Below are positions 41,596 through 46,534 of a DNA stretch of 64,000 nt, one piece after another. How positions within the stretch are numbered: the stretch's first letter is position 1; each line of letters starts with the position of its first letter. A program made the translations under genes and the position numbers. Source of the DNA: Schizochytrium sp. TIO01 (Eukaryota > Protista > Bigyra: Labyrinthulomycetes); contig SMSO01000006.1 in assembly GCA_004764695.1 (NCBI GenBank), positions 1,751,859 to 1,815,858 of the forward strand, given 5' to 3'. The notes under the pieces are model-generated. The model did not search any database. It was not told the origin of the DNA and saw only the letters and a program-made list of their open reading frames with translations.

Positions 41596-44500
41596 ATGTC
41601 AGACCACCCACGTGTTGTCGCTGCTCTTGAACAGCTTCAGAATGGCGCTACAACACTGAAGTAAGTTAAGACGCTCGCTCGCTCGCTCGCTTGCTTGCTT
41701 GCTTGCTTGCTTGCTTGCTTGCTTGCTTGCTTGCTTGCTTGCTTGCTTGCTTGCTTGCTTGCTTGCTTGCTTGCTTGCTTGCTTGCTTGCTTGCTTGCTT
41801 GCTTGCTTGCTTGCTTGCTTGCTTGCTTGGTTGATTTATTGAGTATGCATCAATCGAAGAAACATCAAAATGAGAGCACAACAAAGGTGAAATCCTGAAA
41901 GCCAACCTAGATCACTCACGTCCATGCATTCATGCATCTAATGTAATGTGTAATATGTTGTTTGCCATCATTGCATCAAATCGACAGTCTATATAGGAAC
42001 AAAATCGGCTCAGAGGGCGCCAAGGCAGTGGCTGCGGCGCTGAAAGAGAACCGGTCGCTGACATCACTCAAGTAAGTTGTCTACGCAACACCGCAGCTCG
42101 TGGACTTGTTTGTACATGATGCTTGGTTTGTTGTTTGGTGGGTGGGTCGATGTTGTTTTGCAAGTTTATGCAATCTCTTGTTTGTTTGATGGATGGATGA
42201 GTTGTCTGTTTGAGTGAGTATACATCCATCGAACAAAGAGCAAAATGACAACACAACAAAGATAAATGCTGAAAGCCAACCTAGATCACTCACGTCCATG
42301 CATGCATGCGTGCATCTATTGTAATATGTAACGTGTAATGTGTTGCTTGCCACCATTCAATCAAATCGACAGTCTTGACGGCAACTATATCGGCTCAGAG
42401 GGCGCCAAGGCAGTGGCTGCGGCGCTGAAAGAGAACCGGTCGCTGACATCACTATCGTAAGTTGTCTACGCAACACCGCAGCTCGTGGACTTGTTTGTAC
42501 ATGATGGTTGGTTTGTTGTTTGGTGGGTGGGTCGGTGTTGTTTTGCAAGTTTATGCAATCGCTTGTTTGTTTAATGGATGGATGCGTTGTCTGTTTGAGT
42601 GAGTATACATCCATCGAACAAAGAGCAAAATGACAACACAACAAAGATAAATGCTGAAAGCCAACCTAGATCACTCACGTCCATGCATGCATGCGTGCAT
42701 CTATTGTAATATGTAACGTGTAATGTATTCCTTGCCATCATTCAATCAAATCGACAGTTTTAAGTGGAACGAAATCGGCTCAGAGGGCGCCAAGGCAGTG
42801 GCTGCGGCGCTGAAAGAGAACCGGTCGCTGACATCACTATAGTAAGTTGTCTACGCAACACCGCAGCTCGTGGACTTGTTTGTACATGATGCTTGGTTTG
42901 TTGTTTGGTGGGTGGGTCGGTGTTGTTTTGCAAGTTTATGCAATCTCTTGTTTGTTTGATGGATGGATGAGTTGTCTGTTTGAGTGAGTATACATCCATC
43001 GAACAAAGAGCAAAATGACAACACAACAAAGATGAAATCCTGAAAGCCAACCTAGATCACTCACGTCCATGCATGTATCCAATGTAATGCATTTCAATGT
43101 AATGTATTCCTTGCCATCATTGAATTATATCAACAGTCTTAGTCTCAACAATATCGGCTCAGAGGGCGCCAAGGCAGTGGCTGCGGCGCTGAAGAAGAAC
43201 CGGTCGCTGACATCACTCAAGTAAGTTGTCTACGCAACACCGCAGCTCGTGGACTTGTTTGTACATGATGCTTGGTTTGTTGTTTGGTGGGTGGGTCGGT
43301 GTTGTTTTGCAAGTTTATGCAATCGCTTGTTCGTTTGATGGATGGATGGGTTGTCTGTTTGAGTGAGTATACATCCATCGAACAAAGAGCAAAATGACAA
43401 CACAACAAAGATAAATGCTGAAAGCCAACCTAGATCACTCACGTCCATGCATGCATGCGTGCATCTATTGTAATATGTAACGTGTAATGTATTGCTTGCC
43501 ATCATTCAATCAAATCGACAGTCTTAGAAGCAACGAGATCGGCTCAGAGGGCGCCAAGGCAGTGGGTGCGGCGCTGAAAGAGAACCGGTCGCTGACATCA
43601 CTCGAGTAAGTTGTCTACGCAACAGCGCAGCTCGTGGACTTGTTTGTACATGATGGTTGGTTTGTTGTTTGGTGGGTGGGTCGGTGTTGTTTTGCAAGTT
43701 TATGCAATCGCTTGTTTGTTTGATGGATGGATGGGTTGTCTGTTTGAGTGAGTATACATCCATCGAACAAAGAGCAAAATGACAACACAACAAAGATGAA
43801 ATCCTGAAAGCCAACCTAGATCACTCACGTCCATGCATGTATCCAATGTAATGCATTTCAATGTAATGTATTCCTTGCCATCATTGAATTATATCAACAG
43901 TCTTAGTCTCAACAATATCGGCTCAGAGGGCGCCAAGGCAGTGGCTGCGGCGCTGAAGAAGAACCGGTCGCTGACATCACTCAAGTAAGTTGTCTACGCA
44001 ACACCGCAGCTCGTGGACTTGTTTGTACATGATGCTTGGTTTGTTGTTTGGTGGGTGGGTCGGTGTTGTTTTGCAAGTTTATGCAATCGCTTGTTTGTTT
44101 GATAGATGGATGGGTTGTCTGTTTGAGTGAGTATACATCCATCGAACAAAGAGCAAAATGACAACACAACAAAGATAAATGCTGAAAGCCAACCTAGATC
44201 ACTCACGTCCATGCATGCATGGGTGCATCTATTGTAATATGTAACGTGTAATGTATTAATTGCCATCATTCAATCAAATCGACAGTCTCTGTGGCAACAA
44301 AATCCGCTCAGAGGGCGCCAAGGCAGTGGGTGCGGCGCTGAAAGAGAACCGGTCGCTGACATCACTATCGTAAGTTGTCTACGCAACACCGCAGCTCGTG
44401 GATTTGTTTGTACATGATGCTTGGTTTGTTGTTTGGTGGGTGAGTCGGTGTTGTTTTGCAAGTTTATGCAATCGCTTGTTTGTTTGATGGATGGATGAGT

Positions 44501-46534
44501 TGTCTGTTTGAGTGAGTATACATCCATCGAACAAAGAGCAAAATGACAACACAACAAAGATAAATGCTGAAAGCCAACCTAGATCACTCACGTCCATGCA
44601 TGCATGCGTGCATCTATTGTAATATGTAACGTGTAATGTATTGGTTGCCATCATTCAATCAAATTGACAGTCTTAGAAGCAACTTTATCTACTCAGACGG
44701 CGCCAAGGCAGTGGCTGCGGCGCTGAAACAGAACCGATCGATGACATCACTCAAGTAAGTTGTCTACGCAACAGCACAGCTCGTGGACTTGTTTGTACAT
44801 GATGCTTGGTTTGTTATTTGGTGGGTGGGTCGGTGTTGTTATGCAAGTTTATGCAATCGCTTGTTTGTTTGATGGATGGATGGGTCGTCTGTTTGAGTGA
44901 GTATACATCCACCGAACAAAGAGCAAAATGACAACACAACAAAGATAAATGCTGAAAGCCAACCTAGATCACTCACGTCCATGCATGCATGCGTGCATCT
45001 ATTGTAATATGTAACGTGTAATGTAATATATTGCCTGCCTTCATTCAATCAAATCGACAGTCTTGAAAGCAACTGTATCGGCTCAGAGGGCGCCAAGGCA
45101 GTGGGTGCGGCGCTGAAAGAGAACCGGTCGCTGACATCACTATAGTAAGTTGTCTACGCAACACCGCAGCTCGTGGACTTGTTTGTACATGATGCTTGGT
45201 TTGTTGTTTGGTGGGTGAGTCGGTGTTGTTTTGCAAGTTTATGCAATCGCTTGTTTGTTTGATGGATGGATGAGTTGTCTGTTTGAGTGAGTATACATCC
45301 ATCGAACAAAGAGCAAAATGACAACACAACAAAGATAAATGCTGAAAGCCAACCTAGATCACTCACGTCCATGCATGCATGCGTGCATTTATTGTAATAT
45401 GTAACGTGTAATGTATTGCTTGCCATCATTCCATCAAATCGACAGTCTTCAACACAACCAGATCGACGACGAGGGCGCCAAGGCAGTGGCTGCGGCGCTG
45501 AAAGAGAACCGGTCGCTGACATCACTATCGTAAGTTGTCTACGCAACACCGCAGCTCGTGGACTTGTTTGTACATGATGCTTGGTTTGTTATTTGGTGGG
45601 TGGGTCGGTGTTTTTTTGCAAGTTTATGCAATCGCTTGCTTGTTTGTTTGGTTTGTTTGATGGATGGATGGATGGATGGATGGGTTGTCTGTTTGAGTGA
45701 GTATACATGCATCGAACAAAGAGCAAAATGACAACACAACAAAGATAATAGCTGACAGCCAACCTAGATCACTCACGTCCATGCATGCATGTATCTAATG
45801 TAATGCATTGCAATGTAATGTATTGCTTGCCATCATTGAATTATATCAACAGTCTTCGTGCGAACAATATCGGCGACGAGGGCGGCAAGGCAGTGGGTGC
45901 GGCGCTGAAAGAGAACCGGTCGCTGACATCACTCGAGTAAGTTGTCTACGCAGCTCAAAGACGTTTTTGTACATGATCCTTGCTTTGTTGGTTGGTGGGT
46001 GGGTTGGTGTTTTTTTGTCAAGTTTTGTTTAGCAAGTTTACTCGATTGCTTGTTTGTTTAATTCTGTTTTTGCTTGTTTGGTTGGGGTGGATGCAACAGA
46101 GAGCATGACCACATCAAAGGAGAAATGAAATTGTACTATCATTCCTTTGGTACCTTAGATGAGGTTCAATTGTTAACTGACGAACGGAGATGATGCTATT
46201 TGGTCTGCTAATTCTTAGATTAAGATTGAGCTATGAAGGACAGAGGGAGCTGAAATTGAATGAAGAGATTTATTATGCAAAGACAAGAAGGACAAGTCTT
46301 GAGCAGATCTCTCGTGAGCTTGGTTGTATACATGCTGTAAACAATGCACTTTCTATGCCATCTTCAGTGAAACTCAGTCGTTCTGGACAGAGTCTGCTTG
46401 CTAGCAGTAATGGTGAGCAGAGCTCGAAAGAGGAATTTCTTGCTACGCAGAAAGTAGAGCTTGATATATTGGAAGCTTTAATCGTTGCCTTTAGTGAATC
46501 ATTGCGATTGCTGGGCCCTTACATTTTTGAATGA
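41596..46534 (+). CDS. Variable LRR-array protein: 13 exons, 11 single-LRR 84-nt exons, 434 aa
   Basis: Exon 1 41596-41660 (MSDHPRVVAALEQLQNGATTL). LRR exons 41988-42071, 42373-42456, 42758-42841, 43137-43220, 43522-43605, 43901-43984, 44286-44369, 44671-44754, 45061-45144, 45446-45529 and 45853-45936. Last exon 46219-46534. Every donor is GTAAGT; LRR acceptors are ACAG and the last is CTAATTCTTAG; all phase 2. Total 1305 nt = 435 codons, stop only at the end. Consensus LxxNxIGSEGAKAVAAALKENRSLTSLx is an RI/NLR-type 28-aa LRR. Confidence 0.9.
41675..41828. repeat. (GCTC)n/(GCTT)n tetranucleotide microsatellite in intron 1 of the LRR-array gene
   Basis: About 35 GCTT units starting just after the GTAAGT donor at 41661. 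Confidence 0.95.
41870..46010 (+). repeat. Tandem array of ~385-bp units (11 copies), each one intron plus one LRR exon
   Basis: Exon-start spacings are 385, 385, 379, 385, 379, 385, 385, 390, 385 and 407 bp. Intron sequence is near-identical between units. Confidence 0.97.

Follow-up and report, generated by a model that had tools for sequence, protein, structure and literature searches.

A one-repeat-per-exon leucine-rich repeat gene family in the ribosomal DNA spacers of Schizochytrium sp. TIO01, with four codons per repeat probably kept diverse by selection

A split-repeat gene between the 5S and 18S rRNA genes

The stretch of DNA considered here – a window of 64,000 nucleotides from Schizochytrium sp. 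TIO01 (contig SMSO01000006.1) – carries a tandem array of ~385-bp units between 5S and 18S ribosomal RNA (rRNA) genes. This array forms the body of a gene of 13 exons (41596-46534, + strand): a start exon, 11 exons that each encode one leucine-rich repeat (LRR), and a terminal exon. The gene is one of a large family, and within each LRR exon a handful of bases is hypervariable while the remainder of the unit, intron included, is almost uniform. A critical issue is what maintains diversity at so few positions. Our data give good support to diversifying selection acting upon the predicted beta-strand face of the repeats, and we consider it probable that the family constitutes a germline repertoire of binding proteins.

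The architecture of the gene is strikingly regular. All 11 internal exons are exactly 84 nt long, have AG and GTAAGT borders and encode one 28-residue repeat of the ribonuclease inhibitor (RI) type. The introns measure ~301 nt, and intron plus exon make up the unit, of which the tandem array (41840-46025, + strand) comprises 10.9 copies according to Tandem Repeats Finder and unit alignment. In frame 2 each exon reads L-x-x-N-x-I-G-S/D-E-G-A-K-A-V-A/G-A-A-L-K-E-N-R-S-L-T-S-L, and the last two bases join the first base (T) of the next exon to form a junction codon. The introns thus split the repeat after the second base of LRR motif position 5, inside the beta-strand, and the phase is equal at both exon ends. 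The start exon (41596-41660, + strand) opens with ATG, runs for 21 codons plus 2 nt and ends in ...ATTL followed by the two bases of the first junction codon, a phase that fits the next exon. By frame continuity, base 1 of the terminal exon (46219-46534, + strand) completes the junction codon GAA and is followed by 104 codons and a stop.

The variable residues surround an asparagine. In the LRR exons, all on the + strand, this x-x-N-x segment reads YR-N-K in exon 1 (41988-42071), DG-N-Y in exon 2 (42373-42456), KW-N-E in exon 3 (42758-42841), SL-N-N in exon 4 (43137-43220), RS-N-E in exon 5 (43522-43605) and SL-N-N again in exon 6 (43901-43984), which is identical to exon 4. It continues as CG-N-K in exon 7 (44286-44369), RS-N-F in exon 8 (44671-44754), the exon whose scaffold has diverged most, ES-N-C in exon 9 (45061-45144), QH-N-Q in exon 10 (45446-45529) and RA-N-N in exon 11 (45853-45936); codon 8 of these last two exons encodes D. 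The junction codons specify, in gene order, N, N, S, Y, N, D, N, S, N, Y, S and E. An earlier note on this DNA, written from the letters alone, had listed these residues along with the coordinates and lengths of the exons, and when the exons were re-read every entry was found as listed.

Intron 1 (41661-41987, + strand) differs from the others in holding a (GCTT)40 microsatellite at 41673-41833; its 3′ half shares homology with the intron of the repeat unit. This microsatellite differs in length by 12 nt between duplicate arrays found elsewhere in the genome (on C31 and C19). Open reading frames (ORFs) of 91-131 residues also occur on the minus strand within the introns (42081-45549). They resemble each other because the introns are repeats, and have no support as genes.

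Conceptual translation predicts an LRR-only protein: a head of 21 residues, 11 LRRs and a putatively helical tail of 104 residues. Against Pfam the terminal exon gave a chance-level match only (E 0.11) and the start exon likewise no significant match. Inspection of the window protein by eye revealed neither a signal peptide nor a transmembrane stretch, and the protein is therefore probably intracellular.

Evidence for the identity of the repeat came firstly from the exon consensus, LxxNxIGSEGAKAVAAALKENRSLTSL plus the junction residue, which matches the 28-29-residue period of RI-type LRRs. Single exons score 14.8-21.7 bits against Pfam LRR_6 (PF13516), below the cut-off of 23.4, because each contains just part of the profile (positions 10-24 only). 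The exon profile matches solved LRR proteins of the RI class, namely RSP15, DRC5/TCTE1 and LRRC34 (E 1.8e-7 to 1e-3). A search with the terminal exon returned two public proteins. The first (P0001, 105 residues) spans the terminal exon alone, and existing annotation therefore seems to miss the LRR exons. The second (P0002, 250 residues) comprises five RI-type LRRs followed by the same tail as the window gene. In a single-sequence AlphaFold model of P0002 – mean predicted local distance difference test score (pLDDT) 66.6, with 70-88 in the LRR part – strands and helices alternate. The equivalent of L-junction-L-c2-c3-N-c5-I, where c2, c3 and c5 stand for codons 2, 3 and 5, falls in the strands, the GxxGAxxxAxxLKxN scaffold falls in the helices, and the terminal-exon region appears, at low confidence, as two long helices. 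Foldseek matched the model to the LRR domains of NOD2, NLRP1, NLRP9, RI and tropomodulin.

The family is transcribed and spliced as predicted. We compared contigs from sequencing runs with the span 42300-46600, outside which lie intron 1 and exon 1; three of the runs (X1, X2 and X7, from three studies and three organisms) are guessed to be RNA, and a fourth (X19) is of DNA type. Contigs from the three RNA-type runs contain many joins in which one LRR exon passes into another with no intron between them, and the letters between read in frame as new variable codons. Many leave LRR exon 2 at 42453-42456 and enter another LRR exon directly; in one X7 contig the 3′ end of the start exon is joined directly to the start of an LRR exon (place 43522); and there are contigs in both X1 and X2 whose first base is 46219, the position of the predicted terminal-exon acceptor. 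The DNA-type contigs of X19 show none of these joins: their loose ends read intron, and contigs cross 46219. Most RNA-type contigs derive from paralogues, and the evidence therefore holds for the family rather than for the window copy individually.

Hypervariable codons in homogenised units

Searched against the genome, the repeat unit finds at least 390 matches of 94-100% identity, and the start exon at least 40 copies of 88-100% identity. From 30 of the matching loci and the window we assembled a genome-wide set of 145 unique exons in 19 arrays, 109 of them with their full upstream intron; the counts that follow refer to this set. Every exon is 84 nt long, with neither indels nor stops, and 143 of the 145 have AG/GTAAGT borders. 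Intron length ranges from 261 to 328 nt while exon length stays fixed.

Within this rigid frame, hypervariability falls on 12 bases of each LRR exon (positions 5-10, 14-16 and 82-84), that is, on codons 2, 3 and 5, the first two bases of the junction codon and the adjacent silent base at position 82. Among units 2-11 of the window, diversity is ~0.61 at these 12 bases, ~0.06 at the other 72 exon bases and 0.048 in the intron (297 columns). The 109 full units of the wider set give the same picture: 0.555 at the 12 bases, 0.031-0.052 in the scaffold and 0.045 in the intron (293 columns). The earlier note had claimed that hypervariability is confined in this way; an even spread across exon and intron, which would have contradicted it, is not seen. 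The alignment of units and per-site entropies that it called for bear out the same claim, codons 2, 3 and 5 having an amino-acid entropy of 2.9-3.2 bits and most scaffold codons one of 0-0.5 bits. Its further claim, that the scaffold is nearly invariant, is true of overall diversity and fails in places: exon 8 of the window carries several scaffold changes, and codon 8 (S/D, encoded by TCA or GAC), codon 15 (A/G) and position 82 (the silent third base of the last Leu codon) are polymorphic.

The variable codons correspond to positions 5, 7, 8 and 10 of the motif LxxLxLxxNxI and encode mainly Y, S, G, R, D, N, Q, E, K and W. In LRR proteins the residues at these positions face the solvent on the concave sheet or begin the ascending loop. 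Placement on the strand face – the structural mapping that the earlier note had proposed – is what we obtain from the motif together with the P0002 model, exposure being taken from the model of this relative. That the variable residues lie on a predicted concave face is thus supported.

Uniform introns might be taken to mean that the units are young. They are not: divergence amounts to 20-24% in the unique flanks of the same genes. The window gene and its counterparts on C31 and C17 share repeat units at 95-97% identity, against 76% in the last intron and 80% in the terminal exon (58% at the amino-acid level). The pattern is general. Of 101 genomic matches to the terminal-exon domain, 96 are open, and amino-acid identity runs from 100% down to ~35%; arrays with LRR units 95-97% identical to those of the window may carry terminal exons with no more than 56-65% amino-acid identity. 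High identity ends where the repeat ends, which points to concerted evolution.

Three further comparisons point the same way. Two units can share an identical 300-nt intron and yet differ at as many as six of nine variable bases, and the distribution of differences at variable bases is equal for unit pairs with identical introns and for pairs with distant ones. Further insight comes from two recently duplicated arrays of 5.7 kb, on C31 and C19, which are separated by ~26 substitutions. Among these are swaps of whole triplets – ATC for TGA at positions 82-84, GAC for TCA at codon 8 – with the sequence otherwise unchanged within 260 nt. Swaps of this kind, free of flanking change, are what short-patch conversion among identically flanked units should produce. 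Codons 2 and 3 are strongly linked to each other, weakly to codon 5, and not at all to codon 8, position 45 or the exon end. Taken together, the comparisons support a model in which the repeat units evolve in concert while selection would keep amino-acid diversity at motif positions 5, 7, 8 and 10.

Evidence that selection, and not mutation, is responsible comes from the silent sites embedded in the variable codons; our reasoning leans on per-codon counts of these sites, with intron diversity as the neutral yardstick. The proportion of nonsynonymous differences (pN) at the variable codons is 0.47-0.68, with codons 2 and 3 at 0.56-0.68. It exceeds intron diversity (0.045) more than tenfold, and the corresponding substitution estimate (dN) lies ~20-fold above that yardstick. 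Third bases stay put. The codon-3 triplets are GGC for 38 of 39 Gly residues, AGC for all 39 Ser, TAC for all 17 Tyr and AAC for all nine Asn; those at codon 5 are GAT for all 30 Asp, AAT for all 25 Asn and TAT for all 21 Tyr. Tyr is particularly telling, being encoded exclusively by TAC at codon 3 and exclusively by TAT at codons 2 and 5: a third base that is fixed, but fixed according to position, rules out codon bias and indicates that the third base is inherited while the first two turn over. At position 10 the always-silent change from C to T is absent from all 145 exons; the change to G, mostly a replacement, occurs 19 times. Pairs of units with the same amino acid at codon 3 use different codons in 5% of cases, as against 3-10% in the scaffold, and this at a codon where pN is 0.56.

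Stops tell the same story. If columns were independent, the 123 non-duplicate exons should contain 17.7, 1.2 and 6.2 stops at codons 2, 3 and 5 – some 25 in all – and yet none is present in any of the 145 (at codon 2 alone, P about 5e-9); the earlier note's remark that no stop arises in the variable codons thus extends to the family. T at the second position, which leads to hydrophobic residues, is confined to 13 of 435 variable codons. Pairwise dN/dS by the Nei-Gojobori method is 2.0-2.7 at the variable codons, a figure that understates the contrast because path averaging on saturated, multiply hit codons inflates the proportion of synonymous differences (pS).

The earlier note had left two explanations standing, diversifying selection and targeted diversification, and these data separate them. 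The second would have the variable codons rewritten by a programmed mutational or templated process, somatic or germline, with selection in a minor part. Such a process would fit the extraordinarily sharp confinement of variation, the differences at six of nine variable bases between intron-identical units, the triplet swaps between recently duplicated arrays, the decay of linkage between codons within ~10 nt and the hypervariability of silent position 82. A codon-blind mutator, however, would raise silent changes and produce stops. Silent third positions in codons 3 and 5 remain at background and stops are absent; the excess is therefore one of replacements, as expected of diversifying selection. 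All four bases occur at the variable first positions, with no base-specific signature, and the triplet swaps find an explanation in conversion between identically flanked units. Nor do the base changes show the adenine-specific signature of a diversity-generating retroelement: all four bases occupy the variable positions, silent positions are spared, and among the 145 exons there is no template copy with invariant codons. A somatic version of the idea recalls the variable lymphocyte receptors (VLRs) of lampreys, in which concave-face LRR residues at the same motif positions vary (cited in PMC3341825). VLRs are assembled from cassettes, somatically, into an incomplete germline gene, whereas the germline genes described here are complete open frames that await no assembly; the family is for this reason not VLR-like in the germline. 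We regard targeted diversification as very improbable.

Diversifying selection on the strand face is, by the same counts, well supported. We also considered whether the variable codons are merely far older than their homogenised flanks, and rejected this as the whole story: silent positions 10, 13 and 16, embedded among the variable bases, are undiverged.

Two features of the exon call for separate comment. Position 82 has a diversity of 0.66 and is tightly linked to the junction codon, positions 82-84 reading CAA in 49 exons, TGA in 33, ATC in 26, CGA in 10 and ATA in 8. Codon 8 (positions 23-25) is dimorphic, with TCA in 99 exons and GAC in 41 – states that differ at all three bases – and other codons in the remaining five of 145. 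These states look like old alleles spread by conversion, or else like the product of constraint at the 5′ splice site, an option we entertain since positions 82-84 are its exon side.

Ribosomal DNA setting and neighbouring genes

The surroundings of the gene are ribosomal. A complete 18S-5.8S-28S unit occupies 49610-55125 (+ strand), its first internal transcribed spacer only ~88 nt long. Three 5S genes, two of them in a 161-bp tandem duplication, lie at 40852-41131 (- strand) and 60039-60157 (- strand) and are transcribed in the direction opposite to 18S-5.8S-28S. Rfam detected no RNA family within the LRR array.

Repeats of just this architecture have been described before. The 'Group 0' LORE-TEARS of Aurantiochytrium limacinum are arrays of about nine ~385-bp units situated between the 5S and 18S genes of subtelomeric ribosomal DNA (rDNA); there are 94 elements in a genome of ~62 Mb, the 5S genes run opposite to 18S-28S, and the elements were treated as non-coding spacers with no database similarity (bioRxiv 10.1101/2023.06.15.545109). 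The window array, with its 11 units, resembles them in unit length, in its 5S-18S location and in 5S orientation, a correspondence of architecture. It departs from them in what the units appear to be: Group 0 was described as non-coding, whereas here we find exon-intron modules of expressed LRR genes.

On the published description, the array might be a structural repeat – 385-bp spacers that serve maintenance of chromosome ends or rDNA – whose reading frame is incidental. Little in our data is compatible with this. Variation is codon-periodic and free of stops across 145 exons; exons are fixed at 84 nt amid introns of varying length; splicing signals are canonical, with one phase throughout; the start and terminal exons, too, are conserved; RNA-type contigs contain intron-less joins; and the exons match RI-type LRRs. 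Of all the explanations considered, this one has the least to recommend it, and we give it next to no weight.

Head-to-head with the window gene lies a second LRR gene (34843-39847, - strand). In this gene a start exon near 39846 is followed by four RI-type LRR exons of 84 nt, with the phase arrangement of the window gene (near 39606, 39155, 38781 and 38341), and by an exon of 943 residues that contains a protein kinase domain (Pfam E 1e-29); its Cys-rich C-terminus has no Pfam match at E<=0.01. A 120-residue ORF at 63620-63982 (- strand) is closely similar to this C-terminus, which implies that a second paralogue begins at the window's right edge. Further start and terminal exons of LRR genes lie just past the window, at C5:1825048 and C5:1831920. 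Two more copies of the window gene, inverted and ~33 kb apart, are present at C30:5477851-5483810 (+ strand) and C30:5516576-5522535 (- strand); their units and terminal exons are identical to those of the window, and a single junction codon differs (Y versus N, unit 3).

A putative binding surface and its partners

The closest parallel in design comes from another stramenopile. In the LRR-ROCO genes of the brown alga Ectocarpus, which encode candidate receptors, each repeat is encoded by one exon of 72 nt (a type I LRR of 24 residues), exons are shuffled, and concave residues are under positive selection, with a reported site omega of ~1.4 (Zambounis et al. 2012, PMC3341825; also PMC11378527). 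The earlier note had drawn this comparison, and accurately. Shared are one LRR per exon, a symmetric phase that permits duplication and shuffling, and positive selection on the concave face. Where the algal genes have a ROC-COR GTPase, none is present between 41596 and 46534, and the exons here are of 84 nt and RI type, with a novel helical tail. The present family adds genome-wide homogenisation of introns (95-97%), residence in subtelomeric rDNA spacers and a far sharper contrast between sites.

In fold, the likeness is to the LRRs of animal nucleotide-binding LRR proteins (NLRs) and to RI itself: all share the 28-29-residue LxxLxLxxNxIGxxGA strand-helix unit, and the P0002 model superposes on NOD2, NLRP1, NLRP9 and RI. 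RI binds ribonucleases (RNases) through residues at the same motif positions. Unlike NLRs, the window gene has no NACHT or NB-ARC domain, that is, no nucleoside triphosphatase (NTPase) of the STAND class; each of its repeats has an exon to itself, the split falling within the strand, and its scaffolds are nearly identical. In evolutionary pattern, parallels exist in the repeat-variable diresidues of transcription activator-like (TAL) effectors and in the tomato Cf-4/9 LRR genes, where near-identical repeats are homogenised by recombination and the specificity residues alone vary. Those systems differ in fold and ligand, their repeats are without introns, and they form no genome-wide family of ~100 genes.

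How might such a pattern be produced and maintained? We suggest that a family of ~100 genes, located in subtelomeric rDNA units in the 5S-18S interval, is subject to unequal crossing-over and short-patch gene conversion among arrays, which would hold introns and scaffold 95-97% alike. Selection for amino-acid diversity could at the same time hold four codons per repeat, at motif positions 5, 7, 8 and 10, near saturation. Each array would thereby present a concave surface of its own, and the family as a whole would amount to a germline repertoire of binders. Considering the evidence together, we hold this to be the probable explanation of a homogenised, one-LRR-per-exon family in which four codons per repeat are kept diverse by selection. 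We infer that the concave face binds ligands and that these come from pathogens or viruses.

Several points weigh against this interpretation and deserve emphasis. Surface exposure of the variable residues depends on the LRR motif and on a model of medium confidence for a relative (P0002, pLDDT 66.6). The runs that document splicing are RNA by guess, and their contigs stem from many paralogues, so that expression is a statement about the family. The dN/dS values are pairwise counts on nearly saturated codons, and rampant recombination precludes a proper tree-based site model. Codon 2 has some silent variety (Ser as TCG or TCC). Position 82, though silent, is as variable as the selected sites, which amino-acid selection alone does not explain.

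Diversifying selection could also be directed at partners other than pathogens: nucleolar proteins, proteins of rDNA or telomere chromatin, RNases, or determinants of self/non-self recognition or mating. The solved LRR-only proteins of the RI class are mostly cytoskeletal, axonemal or inhibitory, the genes accompany rDNA units at the chromosome ends, and Pfam finds no NTPase or other immune signalling domain in the window gene – all of which such partners would suit. Yet housekeeping contacts seldom drive near-saturated replacement across ~100 paralogues. Moreover, the head-to-head neighbour couples like LRR exons to a protein kinase, a sensor-like arrangement, and the likely host organism is reported to carry persistent mirusvirus elements. 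Endogenous partners strike us as rather unlikely, and the concave face may instead recognise pathogens or viruses.

A more far-reaching version of the germline-repertoire reading, which we put forward tentatively and as well short of an even prospect, treats the chromosome ends as an engine of diversity. Subtelomeric recombination would homogenise and reshuffle LRR cassettes of exon and intron, selection would maintain ~100 distinct concave faces as a germline library of intracellular binders, and these, paired head-to-head with LRR-kinase genes, may serve as an innate immune repertoire against the persistent mirusviruses or other parasites, with expression perhaps variegated by the proximity of rDNA and telomeres.

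Whatever the ligands, a class of repeat published as a non-coding spacer of chromosome ends proves to encode LRR proteins, in a large and expressed family. Its variation resembles that of a designed binder library, with a fixed scaffold and four randomised positions per repeat, and it offers an unusually clean case in which concerted evolution and diversifying selection appear to operate a few bases apart, making the balance between homogenisation and selection directly measurable. For stramenopiles in general, the finding extends the one-repeat-per-exon receptor design beyond brown algae and suggests that it is older, or has been reinvented more often, than has been recognised. To our knowledge no immune-like recognition system has been described in labyrinthulomycetes; the family presents a candidate for one, in an organism with persistent elements related to giant viruses.

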